From: Bugula neritina
Taxonomy: Eukaryota; Animalia; Bryozoa
Assembly (NCBI GenBank): GCA_964035545.1
Contig: CAXIUT010000197.1
Location: 1-16,913 of the forward strand
Direction: 5' to 3'
DNA: 16,913 bases
Below, one piece after another: positions 1-16,913 of this stretch. The notes beneath the pieces were generated by a model. It did not search any database, was not told where the DNA came from, and saw only the letters and a list, made by a program, of their open reading frames with translations. The position numbers and the translations under genes were made by a program. Each line of letters starts with the position of its first letter. Position 1 is the first letter of the stretch.

Positions 1-93
1 CCCAACCCCAACCCCAACCCCAACCCCAACCCCAACCCCAACCCCAACCCCAACCCCAACCCCAACCCCAACCCCAACCCCAACCCCAACCCC
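1..93. repeat. Left telomere, (CCCCAA)n
   Basis: Perfect C4A2 hexamer array from base 1 to 93, followed by an abrupt switch to AT-rich unique sequence. C4A2/G4T2 is the Tetrahymena-type ciliate telomere repeat. Confidence 0.98.
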
Positions 94-3498: not shown

Positions 3499-3888
3499 GA
3501 TAACTAAATAAAATATTGATAACAATGTTAAATTAATTAATAAGGTGTTAGTAGATTAAATAATAAAAGATTCTATTCTTTAATCGGAATAATTTATTTA
3601 ACAAAAGGAGAAACAGTTTTATATATGAATAAATGAACTAGTTTAAAACACCAAAATAATTCTGTTAATTTGAATTATATCAACTATTTATCCTTTTGTG
3701 AAGTATATTAATTGATTACCTAAATAGATTATCATTTAGTTTTAAAATATAATTAATAACTAAAACTATTCTTCTTTCTCTATCAAAAAATAACTACAAT
3801 TCATCAATAATTATTAAAACCAAGTTTCAGTTAATTAACATTAGAAATTTATTTATTTTTATCATTTGAATAAATAATATTCAGCTAT
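3499..3888. promoter_or_regulatory. AT-rich divergent intergenic region, probable bidirectional promoter
   Basis: 390 nt of very AT-rich DNA between the head-to-head starts of the C2HC gene and the Polo-like kinase. No specific motif identified. Confidence 0.4.
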
Positions 3889-5538
3889 ATGCTTTCAGCT
3901 GATAACAACTAAAACAGACGCATCTTTAGAGATAAAGTCAGAAACATCTCCTACACTAAAGGAAAATTATTAGGCACTGGAGGGTTTGCTAAATGCTACG
4001 AAGCCACTTCTAGCACAGATGGTAAACTATATGCAGCTAAAGTCATTCCCAAAAAATCAATCAACTAAAAAAGACAAAGATACAAACTACTCATATAAAT
4101 AAAAATACATAAATCTCTAAAACACAAATACATAGTAGAATTCATGGACGCCTTTTAAGATAAATAAAACATCTATATTTTGCTGGAATACTGCCGCAAC
4201 TACACTTTGAAAGATCTCGCCAAAAGAAGAAAAAGACTAACAGAGTTCTAAACAAGGGTCTACATCAGCCAAATTGTCAAAGCCATGGTCTACATCCACA
4301 GGCAAGGCATCATTCACAGAGACCTCAAGTTAGGAAACATTCTCATCAATGATCAAATGGACAGTAAAATATGTGATTTCGGACTCTCCACCAGAATCAA
4401 AAACGAAGGAGACAATAAAAAAACCATTTGCGGAACTCCCAACTACATCGCTCCAGAAATACTAGAAGAACAAGGACACTCTTATGAAGTAGATATCTGG
4501 TCTATTGGAGTCATCATGTACGCTCTCCTCTTCGGCAAACCTCCATTCGAAGATAATACAGTCGAACAGACCTATTAAAACATCAAAAACAACAGATACA
4601 TCTTCCCAGCCAACATTCCCGTTAGTCTAGACGCTAAAGACCTCATTAATCGCATTCTAGTCATGGATCCAGTCAAACGTCTGAGCCTGGAATAAATTTT
4701 GTCACACAAATACATGCAATTTCAAGAAGGAGTGCCTCATATATTGCCTGTATCTTCACTGGCAGTTCCACCCATCGACCACGATAAGCATCCTACTCGT
4801 ATTAACCTCAACGACATGCAGCTTGATATGTCAGAAGATATGGACGATGATGAAGGAGTATTGGAAGAGAAAGTGAAGCATTAGGAGGAATAAAAAAAGC
4901 AGATCAAAAAGGACAAGTTTGTTTATATCAGATAATGTTTTAAATTTTAGAAGACATTCGGCTATCTTCTGTCGAATGGAGTGGTGGGAAGTTTCAACAA
5001 ATAGACCAAAACCAACTTTATATTTGAGTTCGGACAATAGTATTACTATGTGGTAAAAGAAGGAACTAAACCAAAAAAGAATCAGATCCCATAGAACTAT
5101 TAGTAAGACACAGATCTTCTCCGACTTTTTCATTTCAAATCATTCTTTATTGCAAAATATTCTCTTTTTAAATTAGAACAAATGCGCAAAAGAACAGGAT
5201 AAAACTAAGTTCTTCTCTATCTTAGAAAATCAATAGCTATCAACGACCTCTAAATAGTCACTCGACTCAATAATAACATCATTCAACTTCATTTCAGTGA
5301 TTTAAGTTCTTTAGGAATTAACAGAGACGATGAAAAAGGTATTTACAGTGTCAACAAGAAAGGATAGCTTAAAGAAGTCAACTATAACTAATGCAAAAGT
5401 AAAAAAATAAAACTCAAAATAAGAAGATTCAGTAATCTCATCCAAAAGTTGTCATAAAAATATGATGAAGATAATTAATAGATATAAGAAGGAAGTTATG
5501 ATGAAGATTAAAACATCAATTAATCCTCATAAACTTGA
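3889..5538 (+). CDS. PLK: Polo-like Ser/Thr kinase with degenerate C-terminal polo boxes, 549 aa, intronless
   Basis: Single frame with TAR=Glu: LGTGGFAKCY, YAAKVIPK, LIEIKIHKSLKH, FEDKENIYILLEYC, HRDLKLGN, DFG, KKTICGTPNYIAPE, GHSYEVDIWS (Plk signatures). The C-terminal FGYLLSNGVVGSFN and RLNNNIIQLHFSD resemble polo boxes 1 and 2. TGA at 5536-5538. Confidence 0.93.
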
Positions 5539-5947
5539 TTAAACATCATCCTCACATATTAGTTATTTAATCATCTAAAATAATCTAAGATAGTCTTCTT
5601 AGATAGTTTCAATAATGCTAGAAGAAGATCTTTTCCATTTTCGAGACAATTTATTTCAATTAGATGTCCTTTTTGAGGATTAAAAATCATATATTTTATT
5701 AATAACTTAAAATATTTAGTTCAATTAAATACATTTGGACAGTATTCTATCAATCGATCTTTTTCTTTATAATCGTTGTTCTAAAATATAAATATTATTG
5801 ATATTCAAATCTACAACTCTAATAAATCATTTTCCCTAATATTTGATATCATATAATATTTCTTTATCTTCAAATTATATCAACTTAATTGATTCTTTAT
5901 AAGCTTAAAACTTATCTTTTAAATCTATAGTCATTATCTTCCGTTGT

Positions 5948-8900
5948 ATGAAAGAATAAAAACCTGTTTAGTACGAATAAGATAGGCCTTCTAGTCGTCA
6001 ATTCATCGCCAATACCTCCAACCAATAGTTTACAACCAACTAAATCAAAAGTACCACCACCAATGTCTTCACATTCATTCCTATCAACCTTTTCAATCAA
6101 CTCAAAGTCATGGCTAACAGTATCTCTTATTTTATTCAGTTTATTTCATAATCATTGCCATTCTACAAGTGATACCATCTATTTCCGTAACAGGAGGAAC
6201 TCCAACCATCCTCTTCCCTCTAGCAGCTGTCATGTTGGCAGTTCTGGTCAAAGATGCCTATGAATAATACTATAGATATCGGAAAGATAAAGAATAGAAC
6301 TAAAGGTAAGTCTAAGTGTTGGTCGAGGGTAGATTTGTAATAAAGCAATGGTAAACTTTGAGGGTAGGAGAAGTGATTAAAATAAGAAAAGATAATCAAA
6401 TTCCTTGTGATTGTTTAGTAGTTAAATCTTCTGATTCTTAAAACAAAGCCTTCGTGTAAACCAAAGGCCTCGATGGATAGACCAATCTTAAATTAAAAAA
6501 CTCTTTTATTAATAATATTCCCAATAGTATATCTAAACTAAAAAACTATTAAACCTACAAATATTAGATTACTTGTGGAGCTCCTGCCCAGCAAATCAAC
6601 AAATTCGATGGTTCAGTTTAAGTTCCTATGCCTAAATATAAAATACCTCTCTAGTCCTAAAATTTATTACTCAGAGGTTGTACTATCAAAAATGTTCATT
6701 AAGTAATAGCTATTTGTTGCTATACTGGCTCAGACACTAAACTTGTTCTCAATTCAGCTAAATTTGAACCAAAAAAATCAAAACTGATGTTAGAAGTTGA
6801 TAAAATTGTCATTTAAGTCTTCATCTGGCAAGTCATAATCGCCTTAGTCTGTTCTTTATTCAATACCATTCTATAAAACAGCTACCATGAAGTCACTCAG
6901 TTCATTCCGATGTCTAACTACTGGATAACTGCTTTGACATGGTGGCTTTTGATGACTTACTTCGTCCCTATCTCCCTCATGGTCACAATGGAAATGGTCA
7001 AACTCTTCCAAGGATCAGTCCTTGTAAAAGATCAGTTTGGCTATTCCAGTGAATACTAGTGCTTCACTTCAGCCAATAACACCTCTGTCAACTAAAATCT
7101 GGGACAGATAAAGTTTGTTTTCACAGATAAGACAGGAACATTGACAAAAAACAACATGGTATTTAGAAATTTGATATGTGGAGGATAGCTGTATGGAAGT
7201 CCTAATCAACCTAGAAAAGAAGAAGGTTAATAATCAGGAGTGGCATTGAGAAAGACAGTTAATTTTCGAGATTCTTCATTTGAAAATGCTAAATAGAATC
7301 CAAGGATACAAGAAGCACTAAGAGTGATAAGTTTATGCCATGAGATAAATGTTTAAGTATAAGAGGGTAAGAGAATATACAATTCAAGTTCTCCAGATGA
7401 AGTAGCTTTGATATACTTTGCCAAACAATCAGGAAAAGAACTCATTGGATAATAAAGAAAGATGATAAAGATTGCATAGAAAGATGGAAGACATTCCAGA
7501 GCAGTTTAGTATTAAAAATTAGCTTTATTAGAATTTAACTCAGTCAGAAAAAGAATGTCAGTTATCATTAGAGATCCATAAACTAAAAAAATATAAATAT
7601 TAACCAAAGGAGCTGACTCTACTGTTAAATTATTACTTAAAGATGGACAAAGAGAACTAACAAAAACACAAGAACATATTGATAAACTAAGCATATTAGG
7701 ACTAAGAACTCTGATGTTAGGAAGAAGATCTATTTCATAGTAATAGTTTATGCGTTTTAATAAAGAACTTCAAAAAGCAAAGAGTATAATAGGGGAATAG
7801 AAGAAGATAAAAATAGATGAATGCTATGAGAAAATATAAAAAAATCTAGATTTGGTAGGTGCTACTGCGATCGAAGACTAGTTACAGGATTAGGTAAAAA
7901 GTACTATTTAGACTATGAGACTATCAGGAATGACTTTTTTTATTCTAACTGGAGATAAAAGATAAACTGCTATTACTATTGGGCGTTCATGCGGACTTAT
8001 TGATTCAAAAATGCAAATCATCAACATCCCTCCCTATCAATAATAATTTGATCACTAGTGGCGTATGAACCTCTTGAAACTCAAATAAGGTAAATAATAA
8101 AAAGTATTTCTACTTGATGCCTAACACTCCATTCCTCCAGATCTACCTCTCAGTCCCACCATCTGCTACAGATGTACTCCCAAAAATAAATAATAAATTG
8201 TGAGATTTGTCAAATAACATACTCCCTACCTCACCATGGCAGTCGGAGATGGATCAAATGATGTCAATATGATCAAGTAGGCCAGTGTAGGCATCGGAAT
8301 AAAAGGAAAATAAGGTACATAAGCAGCTAGAGTGGCAGATTACGTCGCTGGATAGTTCAAATTCATTAAATTACTGACTCTCTACTACGGAAGAGAATGG
8401 TACAGAAAAAATTGTCAACTAGTTAACTATAGTTTTTACAAGAATTGGTTCCACGTTAGCTGTGTCATCGCTTATGGAGGTTTCTCGTACTTTTCAGGAG
8501 TAGTTCTTTACAATGTATACTTATACTAACTATTCAATGTTTTCTATGCTAGTTTACCCATCATCATCTATGCTCTTTTTGATTAATAATACACTCATAA
8601 AGAGTCATACAGAGACATTGATCTTTACCAGCCAGGTCCTGATAACCTTTACTTTAACCAAGCTGCCTTTCTCAAAAATATTGGATTTGCAGTTCTAGAA
8701 GGAGTCGTCACTATGCTTGTCATCTTCAACATTCTCTAATCTGAAGTTTTAGACTCCAATGGAAAAACAGGTTACTTGCAATTGAATGGATCAGTTCTTT
8801 TTGGCTTAATCATTATAGTAGTCAACCTGAAAATTCTTACTATGAGTACAGGAGTCAAAGTGCTTAATACTTTTCTTGTTTTTGGCAGTATTATTTTTTA

Positions 8901-9150
8901 TTGGGTGACTCAATTAATTTACGGTAAGTTGGGAGATCTTCAAGAGCTAGTCGTTTTCTATGAACAATGGTCCTATAGTCCGATTTATTTTGTACAAATT
9001 ATCTTAGTGTTTTTCCTTATTTTTATTTAGTTCGGATACTCTAAGTTTGAAGATATGAAGAGAAGACACAGCAAAATGAAAAGACAAGACTCAATCAACA
9101 AAAAAAACAAAGATTTCATCAATGCTATCGGACATAGCGTAAGAATCTGA
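5948..9150 (+). CDS. P4-type ATPase (phospholipid flippase), about 1060 aa, one intron
   Basis: Motifs [28 protein letters not shown] (P4 signature), FTDKTGTLT (phospho-Asp, 7126-7140), [57 protein letters not shown] and YSFYKN, plus C-terminal transmembrane helices. TGA at 9148-9150. Confidence 0.95.
6120..6139 (+). other. Spliceosomal intron of P4-ATPase (20 nt)
   Basis: gtatctcttattttattcag. Removal gives [21 protein letters not shown], matching the family motif QFxxxANxYF. Confidence 0.9.
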
Positions 9151-9306
9151 AAATGATATCAATACCTGCATCAATTTATCTACTATTATCATCTCAATAC
9201 CATCCAGCTTTCTCCCAAAGATTCCTTAAACAATCCATTATACTTATTTAAATCGATTATTGGAGGAGTAATTATAGTTTTAATATTTATAATACATTTA
9301 TTATTG

Positions 9307-10405
9307 ATGAGCGAGTTGTTTCAACCCTCTATCGATGACTATTAACTTTTATGCGTGATAGGCAGAGGAGTCTTTGGAAAGGTATATCTAGTTCGCTAGC
9401 TCAAAACAAGTCATGTTTTTGCTATGAAAGTAGTAAAGAAAAAGTTAATATAATAACAAAACAAACTCAAAAACATATTCACTTAAAGAAATCTACTAGT
9501 TTAAGTAAATTTAGCATTAAGTCAGTTTTAACATCCTTTCATCATTAAAATCACCACCACTTTCCAAAACTAAGACAAATTCTATTTCATTATGTAGTAC
9601 TGTCCAGGAGGATAATTATATAACCTTCTAGCTATCAAATAAAAATTTTCAGAAGAACAGTAACTTCATCATTAGATAGAACCAAATTCTATATATCTCA
9701 AATAGTCCTAGCACTTGACTACATGCACAACAAAGATGTTGTTTATCGAGACCTCAAACCTTAAAACATTATGATTGACAAGAAAGGGAACATCAAACTT
9801 ACTGATTTTGGGCTCAGTAAAAAGATAAAAAGAGGACAATAAAATGTTTTTTCTATTTCAGGAATGCCAGAATATACAGCTCCTGAAATAATAATGCAAA
9901 AGTAGTGCAATAAAGCAGTTGATTTTTGGTGTCTAGGCTCCCTACTCCATGAAATGCTTACAGGATTTCCTCCTTTCTTCTCAGAAAACCTGAATGAACT
10001 CTATGAAAGCATCAAGTCAGAAAATTTCGTTGTAGATTAATAATTTAAACTTTCAAAAGAATGCTCTAATTTGCTTTAAGGATTATTTCGAAAAGATCCA
10101 TAAATGCGCCTAGGCATGCATGTAACTACTCTTTTATCTAGGGAATAGAAGAATTGACCAGCCACCCTTGGTTCAATGGCATTAACTGGTAGGCTGTTAC
10201 TAAAAAGAAGTATAAATCTCCCTTTGTGCCTATTTTAAAAAGTGAACAAGACACTACTTACTATAGTGCTGCCATCACTTCAACCAGTTTGGAGTCAGTA
10301 AGTTCATACTCACACATGGGAGAAAGAGAAAAAGAAAAAGGATAAAATTTTTTTATTGGATTTGATTACAACCAAGATGAAAACGAAGAAAATGTATAGC
10401 AATGA
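9307..10405 (+). CDS. AGC-family Ser/Thr kinase (Akt/SGK/S6K-like catalytic domain, no PH domain), about 345 aa, 3 introns
   Basis: [87 protein letters not shown] and the AGC hydrophobic motif FIGFDY. TGA at 10403-10405. Confidence 0.93.
9505..9525 (+). other. Probable intron 1 of AGC kinase (21 nt, in-frame, stop-free)
   Basis: gtaaatttagcattaagtcag. Removal restores the canonical ERNLLVEFEHPFI spacing. Confidence 0.75.
9660..9679 (+). other. Intron 2 of AGC kinase (20 nt)
   Basis: gtaacttcatcattagatag; gives FSEEQTKFY. Confidence 0.9.
10122..10141 (+). other. Intron 3 of AGC kinase (20 nt)
   Basis: gtaactactcttttatctag; gives [16 protein letters not shown]. Confidence 0.9.
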
Positions 10406-10567
10406 TATCTTGTTCTTTAATACAAACTTTTTGATAAACTTTTATTTTCTATAAAATATAAAAAGCCAATTCTAACCATTTATTTCAAATTTGCACATTT
10501 ATACCTATTAATAAACTATTTTGATGCATATGAATCTAAAGTCAAGTCTATTTTATAATTTTTAATA

Positions 10568-11161
10568 ATGATGTAGGAGTAAAGTGACGAATAAATTCTT
10601 TCTTTTTCTATGTAAGATAGTTTCTTTATCGACGTCTCACCTCCTCAACCTTTCGACTATATGCAAGTCATCGACAACACGCTTATAGACTATTAAGATA
10701 TACATCTAGAATAAGTAGAAATGCTAGAGTAAGCCAATTAAAATCCTTTTCTTTATCTTACACATACCTACATGCATAACACTCATCATACTCTCGTTCC
10801 TATTGGAGCCAATTTTCAAGTCCCCATTCCTCCCGTCCTCACTCAAAACGCATACAGAGTCAAATCAGCATAAATGATGAACTCGCTCCAAAAGTTGAAA
10901 ATTAATGACCCTTAACAAGGCGGATAGTTCTTTGATAAATACAGTGAACTAATTAGGCGAAGGTTTGGAGAATAACGTACCTACGAAGATGTTAATCACT
11001 TGAGAAATGCTTTTAGACGGATGAACTCCAAACTGACTTTCGAATAATATCTAGCCAAAAACGCCAAATACTGGGAAACTCATTTCAAAAATAAAGATAG
11101 AGCCAATCTGCCAAAAGTACCAGTCAAAAAGAAAAAAAAAAGAGGCACCATTCCTATCTGA
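10568..11161 (+). CDS. Small putative nuclear protein with ELM2-like motif, 197 aa
   Basis: Clean ATG-to-TGA frame with an acidic N-terminus, VPIGANFQVPIP (similar to the ELM2 start motif I/VxV/IGxxY/FQAxIP) and a C-terminal basic NLS-like KKKKKR. Confidence 0.7.
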
Positions 11162-11258
11162 CCTTCTGATCATATTAGTCACTTATGTTTGAATTCATCA
11201 CTAACTAATCACCCTGGAACAAGCCTATTCCTTATTATAACTTTATAATTTAAACTAG

Positions 11259-12714
11259 ATGAGAAACACGATAGTTGCTACTTTGATTCTTTGGTTACTT
11301 TCTGCTGAGATAGTTAGTTGCCAATCTAAATCTTATAATCTATCTCTATGTGCAGGCATCTAGATCGATCAACTGCATTATTTCATCAATGAAGCATAGG
11401 ACAAATCAAACATTTAGTTTCAAAAATAGCGAACAAGTTATATCTATAATCTCTGTAGACAAGTATAAGTCTATTGTCCATACAATAACTCTGTCCTCAT
11501 AGCATCTATGGTCGCAATCAACCATCATCTAGAATCTTGTCTCACTTATTAACAAAAATAAATTACCTGGCTCGATAACTCAACTTCAACCAGTGGAATC
11601 AAAGTTCACTACATACTGCAAACATCCATTGATAACAACACTTAAGTAGTTCTAGAATATATTTGTAACAACTACACTCAACAGTATTGCCCAGAAGTGT
11701 CAGGAGGAGTGCTTTGGTCCTACTTTAGTCATCATTTAGTTACCTACACCATTTTAATTGAAATCATTGGAATCATCCTCATGGTTTTAGGAATATACAT
11801 ATATAGAGCCAGCATTGTCCTTATCGGCTGGGCAACTTCATTTATACTCCTACTCATGGTCTAGTCTCTCTTCATCTTCCTGAGAGGAGTCCCATAATCC
11901 ATCATCGAAAACGTCCTCATCATCTCCATCATTGTCAGCTTCTTTGTTGGATATATAGTCGGCTACTTTCCTCGAGCAGGCATCTTCTGCATGGGAGTCT
12001 GGATAGGTCTTGTCATCTCACTCACTCTTAACAATGTCTTCTTCTATTTCATGGATACGAATCCTCCAAATCTCATACTTTATATCGTCACTCCTGTACT
12101 CAGCATCGGTTTTGGCATCCTCATTCTCTTCATAAGAAAGAATTTCATAATATTTGCTTCATGTACTTTTATCTTACTCAGCTCTTATCGGTTCTTATCT
12201 TTGTCTGCGTGCTCTGAGTTGGTTTTTAGGAGCTTTTCCCAATTAGTTTTTACTATCAAAAAGATATCACTTAGGTTTATCATCAAAAGTGCCATGGCAA
12301 TTTTATCTCTACGTTCTAGCCCTTTTGATTTTAACAACGAGTGCTTCTTCTTTACAAAACTGGTTATTCAAGAAGAAAATGAGAAAAAACAATGAATCAA
12401 CGGACATTTAGAAGCATTTGTAGTAGATGGATAGTTCAATGAAAAAATAAAGAGATAAATTTATTGAGATGAAAAATGTATTTAAAGAATAGGCAAAGGT
12501 TCCAAAAGTATTATACAAGAACAGAAACAAAAAACAATTTGACAACGATATCAAATAAGTCGATCAATCCTTTTCAGTTTAATAATCAGAAGTTTCATCA
12601 TCAATTCCTGCTTATGATGACTCAGATGATAGCTAATCCTAGTAAGAAGATGAGCATAGAAAGGCACTTGGGTAAAAGTTGTTAGGCTATGGAGATAAAA
12701 ATCATGGAAAGTGA
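11259..12714 (+). CDS. Signal-peptide multi-pass membrane protein, DUF4203/TMEM198-like, about 478 aa, one intron
   Basis: N-terminal signal peptide and Cys-containing lumenal domain (YIYNLCRQVEVYC), then about 7 hydrophobic segments including IIFASSLIGSYLCLRALSWFLGAFPNE and PWQFYLY, and an acidic tail. TGA at 12712-12714. Confidence 0.8.
12163..12181 (+). other. Intron of DUF4203-like gene (19 nt)
   Basis: gtacttttatcttactcag. Removal gives FASSLIGSY and an open frame to 12714. Confidence 0.85.
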
Positions 12715-14584: not shown

Positions 14585-14744
14585 TTAATCTCTTAGATAA
14601 TATAAATAGTATCAATAATATTGATTAAATTGACTTTGTTGATAATTCTAATAAATTAAATTTTGAGTTAATTCTTTTTATCTATTTATTTGCTAGCAAA
14701 CAATATATGAAGTAAACTAATTAAGTTCAATAGTATATAAATAA

Positions 14745-16712
14745 ATGGAATCGTCATCACCGAGCAATCTCCTCTTAAACCAATATAATGAACTTCCCAG
14801 AAACAAAGTCAGGAAGAATAAAACAAAAATACAATATTTTCTTCCGACAATTTCAAAAGGACTACTAGATATGATGATATATTTCCTGGTCTAAAATTAA
14901 AAAAAGTATCAAGAAACTGAGAAGAAGCGTAAAGTTGTCTTATTTTAGACAATTTCAATATTAGTAGCAACTAAGCTAAAAGAGGCTTACTTTGATTTGA
15001 AGGACAATTACAGATATGAAGTCAGAAAAATAATAGAACAACTGGCATTTTTCACTAAAAAAAAATCCTCAACAATAAAATATCATATAAGCGTGAGAAT
15101 AACAACATTATTGCCATCTATTATCTGTCGTCATATATTAGATAATAGAGACTTTAGCTATCCCTTGAAATATAGCAATTATCAAATATCCAACTAAGCT
15201 GAAGTAGAAGTATTGATAAGTAAATATAATAAAAATAGGATGTAAAACATGAGTCAAGAATAAACTGAAATTTGTCATTACATAAAAAATGAAAAACAAT
15301 TATTTAGATTTTCAGAGAAACAAAATAGAGTAATAGAAAATAAAATAAGACAAAAAAAATATTGGAGAATTGACTACTAGGAATAAATAAAACAATAAAA
15401 TCATAACGAAAAACCTAGCTAATAGATGAAATATAGACCAGATAAGTATATTTCGAAGAATCAGCCCATGTAAATAGAAAAACATGAGTCTATCCAGCAA
15501 CAACCTATCTAAAGAGTTCAAAAACCTATCTAACCTATCTAAGAGTCTATCTAACTTATCTAAGAGTCTATCTATCCTATCTAAGAGTTTATCTAAGAGT
15601 CTATCTAAGAGTCTCTCTAAGAGTCTATCTAAGAGTCTATCTAAGAGTCTCTCTAAGAGTCTATCTAAGAGTCTCTCTAAGAGTCTATCTAAGAGTCTCT
15701 CTAAGAGTCTATCTAAGAGTCTATCTAAGAGTCTCTCTAAGAGTCTATCTAAGAGTCTCTCTAAGAGTCTATCTAAGAGTCTCTCTAAGAGGTTTACTAA
15801 AAATTAGCTCAATAAATAATCTAACTTACCAAACAACTAGTTGAATAATTTATTCCAGGACTAGTTCAATAACCTGTTCAAGATCAGCTAAGAAATCGAC
15901 CAGAAAAGTATATTTCGAAGGATCACCCCATGTATATAGAAAAATATTAGTTGATCCTGAAAATAGTTCAAGAACTTATCTAAAAAAATATTTTTAGACT
16001 TTTCTAAGAGTCTAATTAAGAGCCTTTCTCAGAATCTCTTTCATCAATCAAACAACTAGTTGTTTAATCTATTCAAGGACTAGTTCAGCAAACTGTTCAA
16101 GATCAGCTAAGAAATCGACTAGAAAAGTATATTTCGAAGGATCAGCCCATGTAAATATAAAAATATTAGTCTATCCAGAAAATAGTTCAAAAACCTATCT
16201 AAAAAAATATTTTTAGTCCATCCGATGAGTCTATCTAAGAAGTTTTCTTTGAACCTACCAAAGAATCTATCTCAAAGCCTTTCTAAGAACCTGTCCAACT
16301 AACCGAACAACGAGTTGAATAACCTGTTCAAGATCAGTCTGAAAGAAAGTTAGATGAGGTTGAAGAGGTTTCATAGATATAATCAAATTAATTGACAAAT
16401 AAAGTCTAATAAGATTAAAAGGTAACAAAATCTTATTTATTGATTTAAGATGAAGAATAAAACCTATAGTAAGGAAAGGAACTAAAATAAAAGAAAGAAT
16501 CGTTGGAAAAAAAGCCTTTTCAACAAACAACAACATCTTTTAACAATAAACAGAGAAAGATAAAACCTCGGCAAAGTGTTCTAAGTCAACCTCGTTGGGA
16601 TATTTCAGGACCTCAGACAAAGAGTAAGTCAGCAATCAGATCGAACATAAGTCATTAAAAATAGTCGAGATAATCTTTTATCAATAAATCTTTGAAATCT
16701 AGAACTAAATGA
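14745..16712 (+). CDS. Hypothetical acidic repeat protein, 655 aa, with (EES[I/L])n tract and about 73-aa repeats
   Basis: Uninterrupted 1968-nt ATG-to-TGA frame under TAR=Glu. All internal repeat periods (12, 21 and 219 nt) are multiples of three. Confidence 0.85.
15435..16340 (+). repeat. Three copies of an internal coding repeat of about 219 bp
   Basis: The core (a/c)gacc/tagaWaagtatatttcgaagRatcaScccatgta recurs at 15435, 15897 and 16116. ctgttcaagatcag recurs at about 15874, 16093 and 16325. Confidence 0.85.
15581..15791 (+). repeat. 12-bp coding minisatellite (CTAAGAGTCTMT), about 17.5 copies
   Basis: Directly visible, with degenerate 12+9-nt units upstream from about 15520. It encodes EESI/EESL in the real frame. 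Confidence 0.95.
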
Positions 16713-16800: not shown

Positions 16801-16913
16801 GGGGTTGGGGTTGGGGTTGGGGTTGGGGTTGGGGTTGGGGTTGGGGTTGGGGTTGGGGTTGGGGTTGGGGTTGGGGTTGGGGTTGGGGTTGGGTGGTTGG
16901 GGTTGGGGTTGGG
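16801..16913. repeat. Right telomere, (GGGGTT)n
   Basis: G4T2 array running to the end of the window, with one variant unit GGGTGGTT at 16891-16898. Confidence 0.98.

Follow-up and report, generated by a model that had tools for sequence, protein, structure and literature searches.

The genes on contig CAXIUT010000197.1 raise the question of which genetic code they are written in and to which organism they belong. This stretch of 16,913 nucleotides (nt), hereafter the window, is an entire contig (C206) of a Bugula neritina assembly that comprises 216 Mb in 321 contigs. A previous reading of the letters alone, referred to here as the sequence-only reading, had proposed that TAA and TAG both encode glutamate (Glu) in its genes and that TGA is the stop. 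We consider it highly probable, at approximately 0.93, that these ciliate nuclear genes use the peritrich code (table 30), in which UAA and UAG are read as Glu beside GAA and GAG and UGA is the sole stop. Five independent tests support the view that TAA and TAG behave as Glu and that TGA is the only stop; the columns of distant homologues, an ortholog from a related ciliate, tubulins, a kinase paralogue, and changes between strains agree in this respect. The code itself has already been described and is not new, since UAA and UAG (UAR) as Glu have been published for Peritrichia.

The long open reading frames (ORFs) of the window, a kinase at 3637-5535 (633 codons) and an ATPase at 5893-9147 (1,085 codons), are open only when TGA is taken as the sole stop. 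The four coding regions of the window that are well supported comprise 1,879 codons with no in-frame TGA, and every ORF closes on TGA, as had been claimed. Glu codons under this code number 78 TAA, 31 TAG, 60 GAA, and 11 GAG in these regions, such that TAA or TAG (TAR) is commoner than GAA or GAG (GAR), at 109 versus 71. Tables 27 and 28 (the context-dependent Condylostoma and karyorelict codes), in which TGA is also a sense codon, were rejected because in-frame TGA is absent from these 1,879 codons as well as from a 1,424-codon ORF of a related ciliate (contig L092, described below). Regarding the identity of the genes, the families named by the sequence-only reading were recovered from stop-free pieces. 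A kinase piece of 108 amino acids matched Pkinase at 5.8e-41, with human PLK1 as its best match among solved structures (5e-43), and pieces of the P4-ATPase, a phospholipid flippase, matched PhoLip_ATPase_N and PhoLip_ATPase_C. The 12 TAA or TAG codons on which that reading was built were all found at their assigned positions and in frame.

The P4-ATPase provided the first test. A 57-residue stop-free piece of this ATPase led through P0030 to 112 full-length P4-ATPases, many of them from Stentor and Blepharisma, against which the translation of the window was aligned with X at every TAR codon. At the columns of the TAR codons at 6295, 6457, 6478, 7093, 7837, 7963, and 8311, Glu is the residue of 111-112 of the 112 proteins (111 for the TAG at 6295). 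The sites at 6457, 6478, 7963, and 8311 had been put forward as invariant Glu, which the alignment bears out, and those at 6295, 7093, and 7837 extend that list. Among the 187 columns with at least 95% conservation, only 14 are Glu columns, but 7 of the 11 TAR codons in this set are located on them (Fisher p = 7e-7). The profile log-odds of Glu were the best for TAA (-2.6, with Gln at -28.0 and Lys at -46.8) and for TAG (-5.9, with Gln at -10.8). As controls, 12 of 13 codons were assigned the right amino acid by the same procedure (GAA, GAG, CAG, AAA, AAG, GAT, GAC, AAT, TAT, ACT, TCA, and AGA), and CAA failed. The window P4-ATPase is divergent: where it has sense codons, it agrees with 82% of the 95%-conserved columns; therefore, some column mismatches are expected.

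These values bear on the ordinary ciliate code (table 6), under which UAR would encode glutamine (Gln). No other code is as common in Oligohymenophorea, and C4A2, the telomere repeat of the window, is also that of Tetrahymena. However, the score of Glu exceeds that of Gln by 25 nats (TAA) and 4.9 nats (TAG), and table 6 would put Gln in place of seven invariant Glu residues of the flippase that are catalytic or structural.

An ortholog from a related ciliate allowed a closer comparison. A fragment (P0001) with 77% identity to a piece of the window led to L092, a 29-kb Logan contig of run SRR6307338, which has a higher GC content (41%), ORFs that end on TGA only, and, as noted for 6752-11023, TAR at Glu positions. 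The two P4-ATPases are 55% identical over 1,033 columns. Among 59 aligned TAR codons of the window, the partners in L092 were GAA or GAG in 23 cases, TAR in 10, aspartate (Asp) in 8, Gln in 3, and lysine (Lys) in 3, and the 3 Gln partners among these 59 pairs further argue against table 6. The 37 aligned Gln codons of the window faced Gln 18 times and never TAR, and its 86 Lys codons faced Lys 48 times. TAA alone faced Glu 17 times and Lys twice, which is relevant to a split code reported for Oligohymenophorea sp. PL0344, in which UAA is Lys and UAG is Glu (PMC10553269). The reading of TAG as Glu would be common to both, but Lys was placed 44 nats below Glu for TAA in the P4-ATPase profile. 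The Mesodinium code, in which UAR is tyrosine (Tyr), fared no better because Tyr was never among the top-ranked candidates.

Tubulin genes on sister contigs led to the same assignment. The alpha-tubulin coding sequence of contig C16 contains 13 TAA and 1 TAG, and when it was compared with the alpha-tubulin of C87, 11 TAR codons were aligned to sense codons, and 9 of these faced Glu (in MRE, CLEHG, GKEI, MERL, VEPYN, LEH, and GMEEGEF); the remaining 2 are located in variable regions. In the comparison of a divergent tubulin on C255 with the beta-tubulin of C10, 15 of 26 TAR codons were on Glu, including 7 of 9 TAG. Neither comparison placed any TAR on Gln or Lys. Table 6 is contradicted by the tubulins, the profile log-odds, and L092 alike, and we regard it as very improbable. 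With TAA on Glu 8 times and on Lys 0 times in the alpha-tubulins, a code of the PL0344 or Mesodinium type is likewise contradicted and is the most remote of the readings considered. Thus, a predominance of TAR at Gln or Lys columns was not observed in the P4-ATPase, L092, or tubulin comparisons. The two alpha-tubulins (L036 on C16 and L034 on C87) share only 80% protein identity and differ in the number of TAR codons, with 14 in the divergent copy and 5 in the other; this imbalance may reflect expression-linked codon choice or the presence of two ciliate species in the assembly.

Kinases of the window were examined in a similar manner. A paralogue of the AGC kinase on C154 has GAG, GAA, and GAA at the positions of TAG 9595, TAA 9613, and TAA 9762, which agrees with the proposed Glu at these three sites, and the last of these, in DLKPEN, is GAG in the kinase of L092. 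The converse was noted at the APE motif, which has TAA in the C154 paralogue and GAA in the window. The alphaC Glu at 9484 is TAR in both AGC kinases (TAG in the paralogue). The claim for the Polo-like kinase (Plk) held in part: TAA 4156 faces GAA in the kinase of a related ciliate and TAA 4096 faces TAA, whereas TAA 4249 faces isoleucine (Ile) and is uninformative. Variation between strains was assessed by aligning contigs of four runs to 5893-10157. Among 24 single-base coding differences, 21 are silent if TAR is Glu, including GAA to TAA (7795), TAA to GAA (9502), and TAA to TAG (7596).

Candidate suppressor tRNAs, the search for which had been suggested, were found for one of the two codons in the assembly. 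Two tRNA(CUA) genes are present on sister contigs (C10:16787-16858 and C256:3981-4052), with approximately 75% pairwise identity, and C10 carries both its tRNA(CUA) and the beta-tubulin gene described above. A tRNA(UUA), the counterpart for the other codon, was seen in metagenome contigs only. Public metagenomes were scanned with the anticodon loop and T-arm common to both tRNA(CUA) genes, and 78 contigs with 60 tRNA(CUA) and 22 tRNA(UUA) genes were obtained. The C10-type tRNA(CUA) occurs in approximately 35 of the metagenome contigs at 97-99% identity, and paralogues with a UUA anticodon that are 89-90% identical to the C10 type are present in this set (L112 and L105). Several of the tRNA-bearing contigs, L151 (YTH-TAG...RAP-TAG), L117, and L128, also encode kinases with TAR at sites that we take to be Glu from CDK and NEK kinase motifs. 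As a possibility less far-reaching than an independent reassignment, which is considered below, the two distinct tRNA(CUA) families may record Glu overwriting an ancestral code in which UAR was Gln.

Several observations weigh against our interpretation. The margin of Glu over Gln for TAG is modest in the P4-ATPase alone (4.9 nats, as given above), and distant homologues have Gln at the columns of three TAR codons (8320, 8353, and 8527). These sites suggested a mixed or context-dependent decoding, in which TAR would mainly be Glu, but a second tRNA would also insert Gln at TAR, or TAR would act as a stop at some gene ends. Consistent with this possibility, the anticodon arm of the C10 tRNA(CUA) resembles that of the host tRNA-Gln, and the C16 alpha-tubulin ends in ...TAA TGA. 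However, all three sites are GAA or GAG in L092, which indicates a lineage-specific change from Gln to Glu and makes mixed decoding unnecessary, and no TAR was located on a conserved Gln of the tubulins. The resemblance of the anticodon arms is also offset by L133, one of the metagenome contigs obtained with the tRNA pattern, in which a tRNA-Glu(UUC) has the anticodon loop CUUUCAA; therefore, a loop ending in AA is not specific to Gln tRNAs. The idea of a mosaic tRNA, with a Gln arm on a Glu body, is not supported in that form by this finding. Moreover, all ORFs reach TGA at homologous C-termini: in the window and in L092, the P4-ATPase ORFs reach their TGA 4-9 codons beyond the last aligned position of the two orthologs, and the tubulin ORFs end on TGA at the usual acidic tail or expected C-termini. 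Dual decoding as Glu and Gln, as drawn from the three Gln-column sites, was accordingly rejected on the GAR codons of L092, and mixed decoding in its wider form is improbable.

The tRNA results also leave points that count on the same side. The similarity of the tRNA(CUA) genes to the host tRNAs for Glu, Asp, Gln, and Lys was approximately equal in a multiple alignment (0.58-0.66), which does not fix their amino acid identity. Patterns of the anticodon loop and T-loop yielded no tRNA(UUA) among the 100 places listed in the assembly, which were mostly host repeat; a tighter pattern returned only the CUA tRNAs on small contigs, and a covariance model of this pair of CUA tRNAs returned host tRNAs only. 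ARAGORN did not recognize a possible tRNA(UUA) on host chromosome C1 as a tRNA. The absence of a tRNA(UUA) from the assembly, even though TAA is commoner than TAG, is weak evidence because the host repeat swamped the searches and the ciliate is only partly assembled. Regarding expression, no RNA run was found to contain the sequence of the window, and the matching runs that were aligned are genomic contigs without joints. Covariance and pattern searches of the assembly for ciliate ribosomal RNA, with a 5.8S model and two conserved 18S patterns, detected only host ribosomal DNA (rDNA; C6, C9, and C135), which touches on the taxon rather than the code.

Two side observations concern these tRNA searches. 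On the minus strand of L133, the tRNA-Glu(UUC) is located approximately 290 nt from an 88%-identical paralogue (tRNAs at approximately 366-436 and 659-730) that has an anticodon loop of 8 nt (CCUUUAAA). This paralogue may represent an emerging suppressor, a suppressor of frameshifts, or a gene copy in decay. The host repeat family that dominated the pattern searches, accounting for well over half of the 100 places listed, contains TTTTAAACTTTTGGGTTATTTGTTCAAAAC and lies at many places on the G000 chromosomes C1 and C2 (for example, C1:388056-388085).

The question of the owner was approached from the structure of the contig. The window carries C4A2/G4T2 telomeres at both ends (Table 1), from which it follows that it is the whole macronuclear chromosome of a ciliate, 16.9 kb in length; its GC content is 24-38%. 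Contigs C1-C9 of the assembly are 24-36 Mb, where lengths were returned, and contain intron-split tubulin genes, rDNA arrays, and clusters of tRNA genes, and these large chromosomes look like those of an animal host. The same ciliate DNA was found, with differences of approximately 0.3-0.5%, in DNA runs under three organism labels from three studies, which implies that the ciliate is an associate or contaminant and not the main subject of the assembly.

As for its position among ciliates, the sequence-only reading had named a peritrich-like ciliate or an independent lineage. UAR as Glu is the nuclear code of peritrichs and has been traced to one event within Oligohymenophorea, in the ancestor of which UAR was decoded as Gln (PMC10553269, PMC11687900, PMC10089648). 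Because the literature gives this reassignment one origin, in Peritrichia (PMC10553269, PMC11687900), a peritrich owner is the parsimonious reading. In the alternative, the code would be the same, but its owner would lie outside Peritrichia, in a lineage in which UAA and UAG were both reassigned to Glu a second time and independently. The assembly contains no ciliate 18S or 5.8S, and, thus, peritrich identity is inferred; in addition, UAG has been captured by Glu on another, separate occasion within Oligohymenophorea, in PL0344 (PMC10553269). On the other hand, all published ciliates with UAR as Glu are peritrichs, and their change was mapped as one event (PMC10553269). Dozens of metagenome contigs carry a near-identical tRNA(CUA), which suggests a widespread lineage. 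Peritrichs are common epibionts, and the occurrence of the ciliate DNA in runs of three other organism labels fits this habit. Therefore, an owner outside Peritrichia seems unlikely.

Table 1. Coordinates of telomeres, genes, and selected codons of the window
Feature	Position	Strand	Remarks
5' telomere, (CCCCAA)n	1..93		15.5 perfect copies of the 6-nt unit
Polo-like kinase gene	3889..5538	+	34 in-frame TAR; TGA end at 5536; TAA 4096, 4156, and 4249 cited by the sequence-only reading
P4-ATPase (phospholipid flippase), conserved part	6007..9150	+	Frame from 5893; 43 TAA and 21 TAG; TGA end at 9148
TAA at invariant Glu (VET)	6457..6459	+	Glu in 111/112 homologues; GAA in L092
TAG at catalytic DGET Glu	6478..6480	+	Glu in 112/112 homologues; TAG in L092
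TAA at TGDKxET Glu	7963..7965	+	Glu in 111/112 homologues; TAA in L092
TAA at GxEG Glu	8311..8313	+	Glu in 112/112 homologues; GAA in L092
TAA at Gln column	8320..8322	+	Gln in 109/112 distant homologues; GAA in L092
AGC kinase exon 1	9307..9659	+	TAA 9484 (alphaC Glu), TAG 9595 (MEY), TAA 9613 (GGEL)
Putative 20-nt intron GTAA...ATAG	9660..9679	+	Read from sequence; joins two kinase frames and restores FSEEQ/TKFYISQIV
AGC kinase exon 2	9680..10157	+	TAA 9762 is the Glu of DLKPEN; TGA end at 10155
TM7S3/TM198-like membrane protein gene	11259..12714	+	Extends over two frames; TAG 12244 at the FPNE motif claimed by the sequence-only reading
3' telomere, (GGGGTT)n	16801..16913		Repeat seen at the contig end

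Regarding the remaining features, the P4-ATPase frame has no in-frame ATG between 5893 and 6232, yet flippase homology starts near 6007; an exon further upstream, in a different frame (ORF 4877-6169), probably holds the start codon. The C154 paralogue of the AGC kinase (L001) is likewise split across two frames, as at 9660-9679 of the window. The membrane protein gene matched TM7S3_TM198 (PF13886) at 4.3e-9 from a piece adjoining the TAG 12244 site, and we take PF13886 to be the family that the sequence-only reading named DUF4203. A 12-nt tandem repeat of approximately 22 copies at 15535-15791 encodes (Glu-Ser-Ile/Leu-TAA)n inside a 681-codon ORF (14667-16709) with 60 TAA codons, which corresponds to an acidic repeat protein that matches no family. 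Contig L092 ends in ...GGGG, which is probably the start of a telomere. Elsewhere in the assembly, 11 tRNA genes (Met, Asn, His, Ser, Phe, Lys, Pro, Ser, Glu, Met, and Tyr) are clustered in 1.2 kb at G000:C214:42657-45903 (L002 / L013); this cluster looks more like organellar or bacterial DNA than like the nuclear DNA of a ciliate.

In the mechanism that we propose, Glu-charged suppressor tRNAs would decode UAA and UAG, among them a tRNA(UUA) of which examples were obtained from metagenomic relatives only, and the release factor would have lost its recognition of UAR, in a ciliate that presumably belongs to Peritrichia. In practical terms, gene callers that apply the standard code or table 6 shred or mistranslate every gene on contigs of this type; the relatives of the window flippase in databases are only fragments of 37-379 residues. 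Such contigs also flag a eukaryotic associate within an animal-like assembly, one that recurs in runs of three organism labels, and the conserved tRNA(CUA)/(UUA) family could serve to trace this code in metagenomes. The window leaves knowledge of the code itself unchanged and adds telomere-to-telomere chromosome data for a ciliate in which UAR is Glu.

Among the known systems, the code of PL0344 shares UAG as Glu, tRNA(CUA) genes, and UGA as a stop with the window, but reads UAA as Lys, where the window has Glu. Table 6, the code of Tetrahymena, Paramecium, and Oxytricha, is similar in that UAR is sense and UGA the sole stop, and differs in that UAR is Gln instead of Glu. Table 30 has been described for sessilid peritrichs such as Vorticella, Opisthonecta, Carchesium, and Campanella, and is the same as the code read from the window, with TAA and TAG as Glu and TGA as the only stop in a ciliate with a macronuclear genome. 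The difference from table 30 is not one of code, but of the setting in which the organism was met, as small telomere-capped chromosomes within the assembly of another organism.

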